Shown piece by piece: positions 37,779-45,564 of a DNA stretch of 64,000 nt. The stretch's first letter is position 1, and every line of letters starts with the position of its first letter. Source of the stretch: Dimorphilus gyrociliatus (Eukaryota; Animalia; Annelida); the NCBI GenBank assembly GCA_904063045.1, contig CAJFCJ010000013.1, positions 726,156 to 790,155 on the forward strand. Reading direction: 5' to 3'. The translations under genes were made by a program, and so were the position numbers. The notes under the pieces were generated by a model. That model ran no database searches. It had not been told where the DNA came from and saw only the letters and a list, made by a program, of their open reading frames with translations.

Positions 37779-38398
37779 TCAATAATATTTACTTTTAATG
37801 TTCTTGTTCTTCTTTGGCCCTTTTTTAACTATGTTCTTACTTGGAACATTTGAACAAGAAGAACAATCACAAAGCATTCTAACCAATAGCATCATTGGTA
37901 TTATAAAGTAAATGGCATAGATTCCAGTTAAATAGACTAAATCCTCCATGTTCTGAGGAGAATTTGGAACGTTCGTAAAATCGGTTACCCATATATGAAC
38001 AAGTATTGACCAAACGGTTGTAGCAACGTGAGCGGAGTACACGATACTTGGAAGTCTTAGCCAGGGACAATTCATCGATCCTTTATAAAAACCATAACAA
38101 GCAAAGAAGAAGAAAGGTAGCTGAAGGGCAGCTTCACAATAAATGAACGATTGGAACCAACCAGGTGGTTTATCCATAAAGGGATCCTTGAAAGTTTCCA
38201 CATGGTATTTTACAAGATTAAGAGCCTGGAAATTGTGTATTAAATTAGTATTGATGGGATAAAAATGAAAGAGAATGGTTTTTTTACCCATTCTGGATAA
38301 AAATAGGTCGGCAAAATCGCCTGCAAATCTATTATGAGCGTTATTGGAATATGCGTTGAGAAATAGGCGAAAAATAACCAATCTAAACATCTAATCAT
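37779..38398 (-). CDS. TMEM97: Sigma-2 receptor / TMEM97 (EXPERA domain); exons 38398-38288, 38225-37779
   Basis: Spliced MIRCLDWLFFAYFSTHIPITLIIDLQAILP..FKDPF..PPGWFQSFIYCE..QLPFF..WLRLPSIVYSAH.ATT. Confidence 0.92.
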
Positions 38399-39173
38399 CT
38401 TTAAAGTCCCTTAGACGTGGCAATCTGGACAGAAAGTGAACCTTGATACCGGCTTCTTTGCAATCAAATTAGTCAATTATCAATACAGAAAAATTCTTTG
38501 GTTAACATAAAATAGATGGCGTTACTATATTTCTCTATAATTTTATCATTTTTATCTTGCGTTTTATCATTGTTAGTCCACCAATTAAAAAAGAAGATGG
38601 ACTGATAATATTAATATTGATTGATTATAAAAAAAAATGTTCAAATCAGATATAATCAGTTAGAAAGTGAAAGATTATCTTTCTCGCACCTCTTATATAG
38701 TAGTTTACAGATGGTGTTTAAATAGTAATAAAAAAAACAACAAAAAGGATAGAAGTAAGATATTTCTAACCTATCTTTAACACTGTTATTTAGTCTCGAT
38801 AAAGAGTGCAATTATGAAAAGGTAGGCTTTTTAAATGGCGTCAAGTTCTTTTACCTACTTCCTATACTGTATAGGCTGACATAGGTTGATGACGTGCACA
38901 TTAAAAATAATACTCCTCATTAATAGGACAACTATTAAGTTGTTTGGATAATTTATTCCTTTATTCAATCAATTAATTAATAGTTGTTCAATAACTAATA
39001 TTTACTATCATATATATATCATACTATTCGTTATTCTCTAAGGAAGAAATAACAAAAAATGAACTAAAAGCCTTCGAAAGTCTATTATAGTTGCTCTTTA
39101 CCACTTATATTTTATTGTCTCTATTATATTCTAAAAGATATTGAGCAAAAGAAAAATTGGATAAAGAATAATA

Positions 39174-40325
39174 TTAGTAATAAGCGGGCGTCTTCGATTG
39201 TTGACCAATTGACTTATAAATATCCATTTCCGCTTGGTAGTCTTCATCGTCTACTTTAGTAAACTTTCTTATACCATATTCGGCAAACAATTTAGAATAA
39301 TTCGGCAAAGTAGGCAATGATAGGAGAGCATCGGCCAGCTCCTCTTTAATTTCGGTTGGCAAGCTTGATCTAACAACAATTGGTTGAACTGGTAATGGCC
39401 CCAATGAACTAATCGCAATAAAGTCGTCATGAGCATGAGGGTAAGACTTTAGATAAAACTTAAGCGCATTCGAATCGACCGAAGCACATTCCACTCTTTG
39501 TTCACGAACCATTTTAATAGAATTCAAGTGAGAACCTGTTCAAATAAATTTGTCTTTTTTTTATACAAAAGAAAATCATATTCAACGTACATAATTATGC
39601 ATAAATATAATATTGCTTACCACTCTCAAGCATATTGCTGAAGAATGATGAATTATATCCCTTCTTTTTCAACTCGAGAAGAGGAAGGATGTAACCGCTT
39701 ACCGAATCTTGAGTATTATAAGCATATTTACAGCCCTTTAAGTCTTCGAGTTGTTTATACTTTTTTCTGTTAAAACAAGATGGATGTCTTACGATTAAAA
39801 TAATCCTAAAGCTATTGCAATTCTTCTATTGTTTTTATAAAAACAGTACAATACTATACTTACGCTGTACTTTTATGAATAATCAAATCCGAATAGTAGA
39901 TTGGAAGTTCATCAGAATTCAATCGGTGTTCGTGAACGGCTCCAACAGGTAATAGTTCCACATTTGCACCTTTCTCCTTTAATTTTAAATAGGATTTTGT
40001 GCTCATAAAGCCTATTTCGATTTAGAAGGTATCGTTTAAGAATAATTTCTGTTTGCTGCAAACAAACACTTACCGATATCAAAAACGCTAGCTGATATGG
40101 ATTCAGCATCTGACGTGGAAGTCTGTTCACATAATGATCTACTCTCTACAATCAAAATGGAGCCTTTCGATAACTTTTCCTCGATAAATTTTTGATATAC
40201 CTGAAATAAACAAGCAATAATTAATTTGTTATTTTTTTCTAATCTCTTTTAATGAGGTCTACTTGGTATAACTCCAAGCTCATGCTAGGCGTTAAAAATG
40301 TGGCAATTTTCAAATAGCTGTCCAT
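39174..40325 (-). CDS. PhnD/phosphonate ABC-transporter substrate-binding-protein-like, about 281 aa; exons 40325-40263, 40200-40074, 40011-39864, 39766-39621, 39535-39174
   Basis: LKIATFLTPS, DIGFMS, PIYYSDLIIH, DLKGCKYAYNTQDSVSGY, ESGSHLNSIKMV..ASVDS and LGPLPVQPIVVRSSLP..KEELADALL follow the PhnD/SsuA/transferrin-family layout. Four phase-consistent GT-AG introns. Confidence 0.85.
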
Positions 40326-40890
40326 TTTTTAGTGCTCCCTTAAAATATTATGAAATTGATACAGCCTTTCTTCCCAAAGTCAAACAAAGCTGTAGAAGAC
40401 AAAAAGAGAGGCTTATGTAAATCAATCTTTTCAATTTATGGATACTGTAACAATTTTAAGTGAATAAAATTCGACACTGACAAAAAATAGCGGCAAAATT
40501 TGAAAATAACACTTCAAAAACAAAACTTGCTTGTATTTATTGTATTTATTTTTAACAGAAACACAGCCGACATGTTATTATAAGGCTAATAATCGGCAAT
40601 TTAAATACACCAAACAAATCAATTAAATATTATAAACAAGACGTTACTGTTGAAATCCTTCAATATAATTCTTGCCATTTCATTGTATCTGACTCACAAA
40701 AAGGAAAAATTTCTGCATGAATTTTCCTTTCTTAGATTAACAAATAACATTGCAAACACCTTAAAGACTTCTTTTAAAACAGTACAGCGTCATAGTATAG
40801 ATGACTAGTACCGAGATAGAATAAAATAAGCAAAATTGACAAAGAAACTCATGAACAATGAATAGTGCGGAAAAAAATATAATTGATAAA

Positions 40891-43695: not shown

Positions 43696-43761
43696 TTAGA
43701 GTAGGAAAACCCCTATTATCGAAGTGTCTAATTCGGCAGTTTGAACATCGGTGACGAAAAC

Positions 43762-45564
43762 ATGCCGCATGTCTTATCCGAATTGCAGTTGAAAAGATTA
43801 ACGGAGCACAAATATAGTGCTACCGGCAGTTCGATTTTAGAGCCTCTTATGCAAAAGTTTTGGCGATGGATTGTTGAGCAAATTCCGTTGTGGTGGGCCC
43901 CGAACGCGATAACACTTACCGGGTTATTCTGCAATGTCGCCACGACGATAATCTTATGCTACTACAGTCCAGATATACAGGGAAAGGTGAGTTTATTATG
44001 AAATAGTTGTCATACTGCCAGCGGTTTGACGGTGTATATATTTACACGTAAAAAATACCGCTATAAATTACTATTGTTTTCTTTATAAATATAGCAAATC
44101 GGTAACAAGTCTATATTCGGTATTCATATAGCCTCCAGCCTGGGCGTTTTTACTATGTGCCAGTGGTTTGTTCATGTACCAAGTCCTTGACGCCATTGAC
44201 GGTAAACAAGCTAGGCGGACAAACTCTTCTTCTCCATTAGGCGAGCTCTTCGACCACGGTTGTGACTCGGTGTCAACAGGTACACTATGCTTTCTTAAAT
44301 TATAAGTTTTCAATAGTTAAGATCTTATCATAATCTTTATCTGATACGTCATTCTGATGGTTAATGAACTTTGACATTGCAGTATTCGTGGTGTTAGGCT
44401 GCTGTATTGCTGTACAATTAGGAAAACATCCGTCTTTCGTGTTTATTGAAGTTTTCACTACCATCTTCCTCTTTTATGCTGCTCATTGGCAAACCTACGT
44501 TACGGGTACAATGAAATTCGGGAAACTAGACGTCACTGAAGCGCAAATTTCCATCATAACTATCCATATATTAACGGCAATATTTGGGATTGAGATATGG
44601 GATACGCCAGTACCGGTTATCGGAGAACTTAGGTTTGCTCCCGTGTACTTTAGCATATTTACTGCCATATTGGCCTCAAGGCTCTACTTTGGTACTATCT
44701 TCATCCAAGGAGGAGCAGGAAAAAATGGATCTACTATAGCAGTTAGTAAATCAATTTTTAAATGTCCTTATTTTTTATTTGTAAACCTTGACCTTTATGT
44801 TATCATATATTTTTCTTAAACTGAAGCTTTTGTTTATTTAATAGAATTATCTCAGAATTTGTACCCTAAAGCAGTGTACGAATTAAGAGGACACTCGTTA
44901 TGTCTTTTTTTAGTGCTTTATTCTGCTTCCTTAAAATTTTGCATCATTTCTTTTTTATTTCTTATCGACGTCGATAATAATATGTGTAATACTATAATTT
45001 TTAGGGAACATCCACTCTATTTCCGGCATTACCTATTGCAACAGTTGTTATTTTGGCCTTAATTATCTCCTATAAATCAGCATCTAACTTGTTCGAAACT
45101 CATACTACTCTATACTGCGTTAGTTTTGGAATTGTAGCTGCAAAGGTAAGAAAAATACAGGATTATATTACGGATTAATGAATTTGATATTTGTTAAAGG
45201 TGATCAACAAACTCGTCGTCGCGCATATGACAAAAAGTGAAATGGATTTACTTGATCCCTGCTTAACCGGGCCATCGTTACTGTTCCTTAATCAGTACTT
45301 TAATATGCTATTTAATGAGCATATTGTTCTCTGGCTAGCCTGTGTAAGTTTTCCCTTTAGAAATATTTTTGTATTATTATTCAGTTTTTAATATCATCAT
45401 AGATAATCGCAATTTTGGATCTATTCACATGGTCTCGAAAAGTTTGTCTAGATATTTGCGAATTTTTGGGTATATACTGCTTCAGTATTAGACCACTGCA
45501 ATCGGGTAATAACGGGTATGAGCCACCAGTAACTCGTTCAAAGACCAAAGAACGCGATCATTGA
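43762..45564 (+). CDS. CEPT1: Choline/ethanolamine phosphotransferase (CDP-alcohol phosphotransferase), about 7 exons
   Basis: [33 protein letters not shown]; signature [26 protein letters not shown]; AHWQTYVTG; [15 protein letters not shown]1 versus CHPT1 not resolvable. Confidence 0.93.

Follow-up and report, generated by a model that had tools for sequence, protein, structure and literature searches.

A spliced gene of the annelid Dimorphilus gyrociliatus, located in the stretch of 64,000 nucleotides that was analysed (the window), encodes a member of an unstudied bilaterian family of leaderless PF12974 proteins, which would descend from one ancient bacterial transfer and act as cytosolic clamps for oxyanions; this reading is given a probability of roughly 0.6. 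The gene is genuine; it is spliced, transcribed and kept under strong purifying selection, and it belongs to an orthologue group that extends across the bilaterians and is not peculiar to Dimorphilus. Judged by its sequence, the protein is a member of PF12974 but not an orthologue of PhnD, and the conservation of its pocket indicates no more than a class of anions, not one ligand.

Gene structure and expression

The gene occupies positions 40325-39174 of the window on the minus strand (Table 1), where a coding sequence of 846 nt, distributed over five exons, yields a protein of 281 amino acids; an in-frame stop codon is situated three codons 5' of the ATG, within the transcript. All four introns have GT-AG borders, and the fourth interrupts the codon of G162, immediately 5' of S163-H164. 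Contigs from four sequencing runs support this structure: intron-less contigs of 994-1027 nt from the runs X2 and X3 span positions 39095-40427 and contain all four joints exactly, and metatranscriptome contigs contain three of the joints in run X6 and two in run X7. The description as a five-exon spliced animal gene, made in the earlier note, is thus confirmed by the intron borders and the spliced contigs. A public entry of Dimorphilus gyrociliatus, P0151 (CAD5120881.1, UniProt A0A7I8VXC0), has the identical protein sequence and was used for the full-length analyses; exon 5 alone served as the query of the representative library and returned public entries of 216 and 281 amino acids. In comparison with a relative of 88% identity, pN is 0.064 and pS is 0.725, which corresponds to strong purifying selection.

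The GC content of the gene, about 0.32, is similar to that of its surroundings, and the flanking genes are animal genes. The earlier note had set the introns against contamination, and the spliced contigs, the animal neighbours and the GC content agree that the gene is genuine. A choline/ethanolamine-phosphotransferase gene is located 3.4 kb from the PhnD-like gene, an observation of proximity only.

Table 1. Features of the PhnD-like gene of Dimorphilus gyrociliatus in positions of the 64,000-nt window.
Feature	Position	Strand	Remarks
5' UTR	40326..40427	-	Minimum extent; the X2 contig reaches 40427, the X3 contig 40399
Exon 1, coding part	40263..40325	-	ATG at 40325, 21 codons; beta-1 encoded directly, no signal peptide
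Exon 1/2 joint	40260/40197	-	As placed in contigs of X2 and X3
Intron 1	40201..40262	-	62 nt, phase 0, GT-AG; lineage-specific
Exon 2	40074..40200	-	127 nt; E40, R42 and divergent lid loop (residues 43-61)
Intron 2	40012..40073	-	62 nt, phase 1; position common to amphioxus, starfish and limpet (alignment column 99)
Exon 3	39864..40011	-	148 nt; hinge tyrosine Y102 (PIYYS)
Intron 3	39767..39863	-	97 nt, phase 2; same position in four phyla (column 164)
Exon 4	39621..39766	-	146 nt, equal length in four phyla; S134-V-S136-G, anion-binding helix start
Intron 4	39536..39620	-	85 nt, phase 1; same position in four phyla (column 220)
Exon 5, coding part and stop	39174..39535	-	H164, D182-S183, Q212, C-terminal YY
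3' UTR	39095..39173	-	Extent covered by contigs, which end at 39095 (X2) and 39100 (X3)

Family membership and predicted fold

The Pfam scan assigned the protein to PF12974 (Phosphonate-bd) as the sole family passing, with a score of 110.1 bits (cutoff 27; E 1.5e-31) over profile positions 44-242 of 242; even single exons match the profile (exon 4 with E 8e-7, exon 5 with E 2e-14), and no transferrin family was reported. However, the PhnD equivalog model TIGR03431 gives only 94.1 bits versus a cutoff of 261.1, and the broader model TIGR01098 gives 102 bits versus 112.05. The earlier designation as a bacterial-type PhnD therefore holds for the bacterial type, that is for PF12974, while the name PhnD was too specific. 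The AlphaFold2 model (pLDDT 91.5, pTM 0.88) predicts a two-lobed type II binding-protein fold around a central cleft, which by Foldseek resembles the liganded, closed forms of ArrX, AioX, PtxB and PhnD with TM scores of 0.69-0.78 and a probability of 1.00, and the open apo forms with only 0.51-0.55.

The binding proteins PtxB, HtxB and PhnD are the phosphite, hypophosphite and phosphonate receptors of ABC importers, and ArrX and AioX are the periplasmic arsenate/arsenite sensors of the ArrXSR and AioXSR systems. The sensors ArrX and AioX (PDB 6x6b, 6esk) are the best solved relatives both by structure (Foldseek E 1.9e-22) and by the profile of the animal family, which places ArrX first with E 2.7e-22, AioX alongside and then PtxB. 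Like the animal proteins, they are not components of transport; unlike them, they reach the periplasm by export and relay their signal to a partner histidine kinase, and their identity to the Dimorphilus protein is only about 20%. The importer proteins PtxB, HtxB and PhnD (PDB 5o2j, 5jvb, 5me4, 3p7i) share with it the Pfam family and the fold (TM 0.74-0.78), as well as the S-x-S...H motif with the hinge tyrosine (PMC5700983), but the Dimorphilus protein has no signal peptide and no adjacent ATPase or permease, and it lacks the residues of E. coli PhnD that hold the amine of 2-aminoethylphosphonate (AEP). A more distant member of PF12974, BstB of Methylococcus (PDB 7t1m), with TM 0.63, 12% identity and Foldseek rank 43, binds sterol, so that proteins of this family can take ligands other than phosphorus anions (PMC10942540); however, BstB is periplasmic and has a deep hydrophobic cavity, whereas the polar oxyanion residues are conserved here.

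Absence of a leader and of a transporter

By sequence and model, the strand beta-1 begins at residue 5, with only four residues before it and no hydrophobic stretch at the N-terminus, and all 120 aligned members of the family, animal and bacterial, have just 1-26 hydrophilic residues ahead of this strand. In tblastn searches of the whole 64-kb window with PhnC and with a Rubrobacter ATPase and permease, no significant match to ABC ATPase or permease genes emerged, and no sensor kinase or regulator gene adjoins the gene in the window. Both the missing signal peptide and the missing ABC genes, as read previously from the DNA, are borne out. The accompanying view that the protein was repurposed after its transfer did not stand: neither the loss of the leader nor the independence of a transporter was an animal innovation, the bacterial sister clade being leaderless as well and lying mostly away from transporter genes.

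Pocket residues and candidate ligands

In the structure study of E. coli PhnD (EcPhnD), the residues E177 and D205 reportedly hold the amine of AEP. With the EcPhnD numbering verified against the E. coli sequence, these positions correspond to N184 and Q212 in Dimorphilus and to N/T and Y/Q/H/F in the family as a whole; since the acidic residues are not conserved, phosphonate binding receives no specific support from the pocket. The oxyanion core of the pocket is, on the contrary, well kept: Y102, S134, S136, H164 and D182 occur in 66-72 of the 72 animal and in 46-48 of the 48 bacterial sequences. These are the residues of the motifs pointed out before (PIYYS with Y102, DSVSG with S134 and S136, GSH with H164 and VDS with D182), all of which are present and align with the ligand residues of the solved relatives.

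The published pocket of AioX consists of Y88, C106, Y131, S161, S163, H192 and D210, and the ligand residues of AioX and PhnD correspond to the set Y102/S134/S136/H164/D182; the residue roles of EcPhnD were also taken from this source (PMC5908839). Thus, Y102, S134, S136 and H164 align with Y93, S127, S129 and H157 of EcPhnD, where the equivalence of H157 and H164 relies on HMMER, which pairs H164 with the histidines of ArrX and Te_PtxB, MAFFT having placed H157 at S163, one residue off. In AioX, the counterparts of Y102, S134, S136, H164 and D182 are Y131, S161, S163, H192 and D210, and the last of them is an aspartate that is missing from E. coli PhnD. Of the seven AioX pocket residues, five are kept in Dimorphilus, Y88 and C106 being replaced by S43 and S67, and six in the bacterial sisters, where the cysteine at the C106 position is invariant; among the animals this cysteine is found in 25 of 72 sequences. 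For PtxB, the STS-H motif and the hinge tyrosine have been described (PMC5700983).

Several positions, the AioX C106 position and the lid loop included, count against the oxyanion clamp proposed below. The S-T-S motif has a hydrophobic middle residue, namely V135 in Dimorphilus and leucine in most members (versus threonine or asparagine), and the position of EcPhnD Y47 and AioX Y88, S43 in Dimorphilus, is tryptophan in most animals. The capping tyrosine of PtxB (Te_PtxB Y208) is matched by tyrosine in 50 of the 72 animal sequences; Dimorphilus and amphioxus have glutamine at this position, as do the bacterial sisters. The lid loop ESRxSGPxxxRxDPF after beta-2, near-universal in the other members, is absent from Dimorphilus, which keeps only E40-S-R42; both it and its relative of 88% identity have other residues in place of the SGP and DPF motifs, and the loop has a pLDDT of 62-66 in the AlphaFold2 model. 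The dinophilid lineage would have rebuilt this loop and may thus deviate from other animals in its specificity. The C-terminus reads PAYY in Dimorphilus; the last residue is tyrosine in 69 of the 72 animal sequences, and the bacterial sisters have no YY tail. Judging from these residues, the core of the pocket could accommodate phosphite, phosphonate, phosphate, arsenate or a related anion.

Distribution in animals and bacterial relatives

Full-length orthologues with 31-40% identity, about 280-290 amino acids long, occur in at least seven phyla, including molluscs, annelids, a brachiopod, a nemertean, arthropods (Lepidoptera, aphids, a cockroach, spiders and mites), echinoderms, hemichordates and amphioxus; LOC591494 of S. 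purpuratus and LOC117289930 of A. rubens are examples. Similar uncharacterised proteins of other invertebrates, mentioned in the earlier note, do exist, and the literature search brought up no publication that treats the animal family. Among the named hits of the word-indexed searches, no members were from vertebrates, nematodes, dipterans or non-bilaterian animals. In the phylogeny with bacterial homologues, the animals form one clade (support 100/98) whose branching approximates the species tree, the split of animals versus bacteria is recovered in 100% of the bootstrap trees, and the nearest relatives are bacterial PF12974 proteins. Dimorphilus is placed within the lophotrochozoan set (95/87), beside the other annelids, Helobdella and allies.

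Three of the four introns of Dimorphilus share alignment column and phase with those of amphioxus, starfish and limpet, and intron 1 has no counterpart at its column in amphioxus, Asterias or Lottia. Other phyla have two exons in place of exon 5, an ancestral intron between them having been lost in Dimorphilus; of four ancestral introns, three were therefore kept in Dimorphilus and one was lost, and one intron was gained. The single clade, close to the animal phylogeny, together with the common introns indicates that the gene was a spliced animal gene before the split of protostomes and deuterostomes, and the acquisition is old, as had been supposed.

The sister group of the animals is a leaderless clade of bacterial PF12974 proteins from metagenome-assembled genomes (MAGs) of Rubrobacteraceae, Acidobacteriota/Thermoanaerobaculia, Planctomycetota, Myxococcota and Chloroflexota, as uncharacterised as the animal family. 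Its proteins have up to 47% identity to the amphioxus orthologue and share with the animals a protein start directly at beta-1 (LRxxTYLxPSxP), the pocket core and, with most of them, the ESRxSGP...DPF loop, but they lack the YY tail and their genes lack introns. At 80 genome loci and 8 metagenome loci, no neighbour was conserved beyond single lineages. The most frequent neighbourhood, at 11 of the 80 loci, is an ABC operon of Rubrobacteraceae in which a LysR regulator, a canonical PhnD-type binding protein, an ABC ATPase and a permease are followed directly by the leaderless gene; EgtB/FGE-like genes come next, at 7 of 80. Being restricted to lineages, these neighbourhoods are too weak to name the ligand. 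It is the bacterial outgroups that give the presumed direction of transfer, and since the bacterial clade as a whole is the sister group of the animals, which are not nested inside it, naming a donor lineage was rejected. An AT-rich sequence, P0054, is nearest to the animal clade in the listed part of the careful tree and unresolved in the quick trees; it comes from a compact, intron-less MAG contig that is not an identifiable eukaryote.

Proposed role and alternative explanations

According to the preferred reading, a gene that was already cytoplasmic in bacteria would have passed once into the stem lineage of the bilaterians, been handed down vertically in most invertebrate phyla and later been lost in several lineages. 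Its product would most likely act as a cytosolic two-lobed clamp closing on a small tetrahedral oxyanion. The helix start at S134/S136, H164, the hinge tyrosine Y102 and D182 may hold this anion, and the family-specific R42 would lie nearby. The ligand would not be passed to an ABC transporter; more probably it would be buffered, sensed or handed on inside the cell.

A narrower function, that of an intracellular sensor or carrier specific to phosphonates, chiefly AEP, and tied to the metabolism of phosphonolipids or phosphonoglycans, is considered unlikely. The solved relatives do include phosphonate and phosphite binders, the leaderless gene of Rubrobacteraceae ends a PhnD-type operon, and the choline/ethanolamine-phosphotransferase gene, through its proximity only, would agree with such a link. 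However, the residues for the AEP amine are replaced, the score for the PhnD equivalog is far under its cutoff, the closest solved relatives are sensors of arsenic oxyanions, the operon occurs in one bacterial lineage only, and the family has members in such animals as Lepidoptera, aphids, a cockroach, spiders and mites. Enzymes have been built on the binding-protein fold, namely THI5/NMT1, HisG and MqnA/MqnD, and a cytosolic enzyme acting on an anionic substrate, to which we ascribe an equally low probability, would be consistent with proteins that are leaderless and independent of transporters in bacteria and animals alike, with the invariant polar residues of the cleft, including H164 and D182, and the cysteine invariant in the bacterial clade, and with some bacterial genes that overlap or abut genes for an AMP-dependent ligase, an acyl-CoA dehydrogenase or EgtB/FGE-like proteins. 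But this cysteine is present in only a minority of the animal sequences, being serine in Dimorphilus, no enzyme neighbour is kept across the bacterial clade, no catalytic member of PF12974 was found among the solved relatives or in the literature consulted, and the conserved residues are the ligand set of non-catalytic relatives (PMC5908839, PMC5700983).

Membership in the eukaryotic lineage of transferrins and phytotransferrins is highly improbable, even though transferrin has the same type II binding-protein fold and one UniRef entry was automatically named 'Transferrin-like domain-containing protein': the best transferrin chain has an E of 0.48, which is not significant, the only Pfam family is PF12974, and the nearest relatives in the tree are bacterial, so that the nesting in a transferrin family that the earlier note would have counted against its reading was not observed, and the pocket, whose decay it would have counted likewise, is conserved in its oxyanion core. 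The least credible of all is bacterial contamination or a recent transfer specific to Dimorphilus, as could be supposed from the overwhelmingly bacterial composition of the top-level family; it is ruled out by the four spliced introns, the shared intron positions and the single animal clade, and the GC content, the animal genes on both flanks and the orthologues in seven phyla speak against it as well.

A bolder extension of the preferred reading, that of an oxyanion clamp of ancient bacterial origin, is speculative and judged rather improbable. By this extension, a cytoplasmic receptor similar to ArrX or PtxB would have been taken up before the bilaterians diversified, and most invertebrate phyla would have kept it for more than half a billion years, dedicated to sensing or chaperoning reduced phosphorus (phosphonate or phosphite) or arsenic oxyanions inside the cell; in Dimorphilus it would work alongside a putative C-P bond pathway of the animal itself (PEP mutase, phosphonopyruvate decarboxylase). 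If true, it would be the first cytosolic small-anion receptor of the solute-binding-protein type described in animals.

Significance

The solute-binding proteins of PF12974 are known as extracellular components of bacterial importers and sensors. The family described here has neither leader nor transporter and would have entered the animals once; purifying selection has preserved it in at least seven phyla, and it presents a clean and datable case of an ancient gene transfer from a bacterium to animals. The leaderless bacterial clade is itself an unstudied kind of cytoplasmic protein with the binding fold. As a soluble protein of 32 kDa with a conserved pocket, the animal member offers an entry point to the handling of phosphonates, phosphite and arsenic oxyanions by invertebrates, and it bears on the biology of phosphonolipids and on the accumulation of arsenic in marine animals.

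Gene Model, Transcripts and Genomic Surroundings

The PhnD-like gene of D. gyrociliatus was read on the reverse strand and assembled by script into five exons, separated by four GT-AG introns of 62, 62, 97 and 85 nt, with a coding sequence of 846 nt for 281 aa and an in-frame stop three codons upstream of the ATG. The public sequencing runs X2 and X3 each contain one contig of about 1 kb over 39095-40427 that skips exactly these four introns with zero mismatches, which bears out the spliced animal gene of the earlier note. Runs X2-X5 were treated as RNA-derived because the share of sampled words of the 1,301-base query present in them, 0.69, is about its exonic share, the run kind on record being only a guess; spliced fragments with a few mismatches occur also in a coral (X6) and a marine (X7) metatranscriptome. 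The protein is identical in every letter to CAD5120881.1 (DgyrCDS9432, UniProt A0A7I8VXC0), and its sequence and Pfam assignment are already in public databases. A second public model, CAD5120882.1 (DgyrCDS9433), starts at M66 in exon 3, and its product of 216 aa would be devoid of strands beta-1 and beta-2 and of the lid loop; exons 1 and 2 are present in all transcript contigs seen.

Features of the PhnD-like gene and its neighbours, in window coordinates
Feature	Position	Strand	Remarks
Exon 1 (coding)	40325-40263	-	
Exon 2	40200-40074	-	
Exon 3	40011-39864	-	
Exon 4	39766-39621	-	
Exon 5	39535-39174	-	
EXPERA/EBP single-ORF gene, TMEM97/sigma-2 receptor-like	37779-38390	-	203 aa; PF05241, E 3.9e-25; directly downstream
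Leucine-rich-repeat gene	~41.1-42.4 kb		animal-type neighbour
CHPT1/CEPT1-like gene, first exons	43741-44819	+	E 9e-23 to human CHPT1 (PDB 8ero)

The flanking genes are animal genes, and the GC content is even across the region. Between the 5' end of the PhnD-like contigs (40427) and the near end of the neighbouring transcript contig (40513) lies a very short spacer of about 85 nt (40428-40513). The choline/ethanolamine-phosphotransferase class, which puts phosphoethanolamine-type head groups onto lipids, has this member some 3.4 kb away from the PhnD-like one, an observation of proximity only and no evidence of a link. As had been claimed, no ABC genes are nearby: tblastn of the 64-kb window with E. 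coli PhnC and a Rubrobacter ABC ATPase and permease gave nothing significant, and the window holds no second copy of the PhnD-like gene.

Family, Fold and Ligand Pocket

The protein matches the Pfam family PF12974 with E 1.5e-31 (110 bits, cutoff 27), the sole family to pass in the Pfam scan, while it does not reach the PhnD equivalog TIGR03431 (94 bits vs 261) or TIGR01098 (102 vs 112), so the bacterial-type family assignment of the earlier note holds and the narrower label PhnD does not. Transferrin was rejected as its family (E 0.48, not significant). Among solved structures, a profile built from 18 animal sequences matches ArrX most strongly (E 2.7e-22), then PtxB and AioX (~1e-12) and E. 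coli PhnD (~1e-10). The AlphaFold2 model, built from a 120-sequence alignment, has a pLDDT of 91.5, and the top Foldseek matches of this predicted structure in the PDB all belong to PF12974 (ArrX, AioX, PtxB, HtxB and PhnD), with TM of 0.69-0.78 to liganded closed forms and 0.51-0.55 to open apo forms. In the model strand beta-1 starts at residue 5, whereas E. coli PhnD has 33 residues ahead of the equivalent strand; the N-terminus has no hydrophobic stretch, in agreement with the claimed lack of a signal peptide. All family members, animal and bacterial, begin directly with beta-1.

E. coli PhnD (EcPhnD) was aligned to the family; what we take to be its eight ligand residues all fall on the right letters of the E. 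coli sequence, with a 26-residue leader. The pocket lists used for mapping were those of AioX/PhnD (PMC5908839) and PtxB (PMC5700983).

Pocket positions of the Dimorphilus protein and their conservation in the family
Residue	Equivalent	Family
Y102	EcPhnD Y93, AioX Y131, PtxB hinge Tyr	68/72 animals, 46/48 bacteria
S134	EcPhnD S127, AioX S161	72/72 animals, 48/48 bacteria
V135	middle residue of S-T-S motif	L in most members
S136	EcPhnD S129, AioX S163	71/72 animals, 48/48 bacteria
H164	EcPhnD H157, AioX H192	71/72 animals, 48/48 bacteria
D182	AioX D210; Asn in EcPhnD	66/72 animals, 48/48 bacteria
S43	EcPhnD Y47, AioX Y88	W in most animals
S67	AioX C106	Cys in 25/72 animals, 48/48 bacterial sisters
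N184	EcPhnD E177 (AEP amine ligand)	N or T across family
Q212	EcPhnD D205 (AEP amine ligand), PtxB capping Tyr	Tyr in 50/72 animals; Gln in Dimorphilus, amphioxus, bacteria
R42, E40	family-specific	invariant in animals

The PhnD-like motifs read from the DNA are thus recovered as Y102, S134, S136, H164 and D182, which correspond to ligand residues in solved relatives and are widely conserved. For H164, MAFFT is one position off (H157 opposite S163), and HMMER matches it to the histidine in ArrX and in Te_PtxB (PtxB). Judged from these residues, the pocket core would suit a small tetrahedral oxyanion, and it has no feature that indicates 2-aminoethylphosphonate (AEP) in particular. The lid loop ESRxSGPxxxRxDPF, near-invariant in the other animal and bacterial members, is replaced in Dimorphilus (residues 43-61, 40075-40200) and in L090, an 88%-identical transcript of another run, and is the sole low-confidence internal stretch of the model; the replacement may mark a specificity shift in dinophilids. 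Despite it, dN/dS of the gene is about 0.03. Against L090, pN is 0.064 and pS 0.725, and the fast-evolving dinophilid form is under strong purifying selection.

Distribution and Origin of the Animal Genes

Exon 5, used as the query against 1.84 billion representatives, gave 357 relatives, of which one, its own cluster, is close and the others are below about 45% identity. Orthologues were surveyed by word-indexed searches with the full protein, an animal profile and the amphioxus member, and by cluster look-ups. The earlier note's statement that similar uncharacterised proteins occur in other invertebrates proved right: full-length orthologues of 277-295 aa, which have in common a C-terminal tail ending in YY, extend over molluscs (gastropods, bivalves, one chiton and one cephalopod fragment), annelids (Dimorphilus, Helobdella), the brachiopod Lingula, the nemertean Lineus, arthropods (spider, scorpion, oribatid mite, cockroach, stick insects, Hemiptera including aphid, Lepidoptera), echinoderms, hemichordates and amphioxus. 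Cnidarian, sponge, vertebrate, tunicate, nematode and dipteran names were absent from the animal-range hits of the shared-word index, which is weak evidence of absence. The orthologues bear automatic names only, and literature searches turned up no publication that deals with the animal family, with where it came from or with what it does.

Quick trees and a careful IQ-TREE analysis (LG+C20) agree and, with the bacterial homologues included, place the animal sequences in one clade (support 100/98, in 100% of bootstrap trees), within which amphioxus branches off, then hemichordates with echinoderms, then arthropods, then lophotrochozoans. Dimorphilus, with its long stem (~1.1-1.25 substitutions/site), groups beside Helobdella and further annelid-like sequences. 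The sister group is made up of proteins encoded in bacterial MAGs (Rubrobacteraceae, Acidobacteriota, Planctomycetota, Myxococcota, Chloroflexota), with up to 47% identity to the amphioxus protein, and the outgroups beyond it are likewise bacterial; since the animal sequences branch beside this clade and not from within it, the donor cannot be named. The leaderless PF12974 protein P0054, a very AT-rich sequence of a MAG (GCA_964523585.1, L094:3835-4704), lies nearest to the animals in the opening part of the IQ-TREE result and is without resolution in the quick trees; its compact contig carries tRNA synthetase, NUDIX and NAMPT/NAPRTase genes.

Amphioxus, Asterias and Lottia have four introns that coincide in alignment column and in phase, as exact exon mapping revealed. 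Dimorphilus retains three of them (column 99 phase 1, column 164 phase 2, column 220 phase 1); it has lost one, and its remaining intron is a gain specific to its lineage. The exon of 146 nt has equal length in all four animals. The protostome-deuterostome ancestor therefore carried the gene in spliced, animal form already. Bacterial contamination, against which introns had been invoked at the outset, and a recent transfer into Dimorphilus are both excluded, and the old acquisition is upheld.

The Bacterial Sister Clade and the Possible Function

The leader is absent from the bacterial sister proteins too, and no neighbour is conserved across their clade (eight metagenome loci for five proteins, and 80 genome loci). 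A transporter link was found in Rubrobacteraceae only (11/80 loci), in the order LysR regulator, canonical exported PF12974 protein, ABC ATPase, permease and leaderless gene. One such cassette (L018:2536-7755, Rubrobacteraceae MAG, OZ243953.1) looks mobile, because an ISL3 transposase gene lies upstream and an IS4/5 one downstream. An EgtB/FGE-like gene adjoins the leaderless gene at 7/80 loci; in several Planctomycetota and other MAGs (L004:7001-9695; e.g., L031:1614-2924) a DinB_2 + FGE-sulfatase (EgtB/OvoA-like) gene abuts it, with a further PF12974 gene after it in L004. Because the sisters are leaderless and mostly transporter-free, the cytoplasmic state is older than the transfer, and the proposal that the protein was repurposed in animals through loss of leader and transporter has to be given up.

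A single ancient transfer into the bilaterian stem, followed by vertical descent with losses in some lineages, is well supported, and the gene that moved would have been already cytoplasmic. The conserved pocket, the closed fold of the model and the missing transport partners together suggest, as the likeliest role, a soluble intracellular clamp that would close on a small oxyanion. The intracellular phosphonate sensor or carrier of the earlier note is a possible alternative, favoured by the transporter genes of the Rubrobacter operon; however, the pocket lends it no specific support, and many terrestrial arthropods carry members of the family. An enzyme built on the same fold is the other serious rival to the oxyanion clamp. 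The PhnD-like protein belongs to a leaderless, transporter-independent branch of PF12974 that is fixed in animals, and the family is a clean and testable case, the gene not being confined to the Dimorphilus genome.
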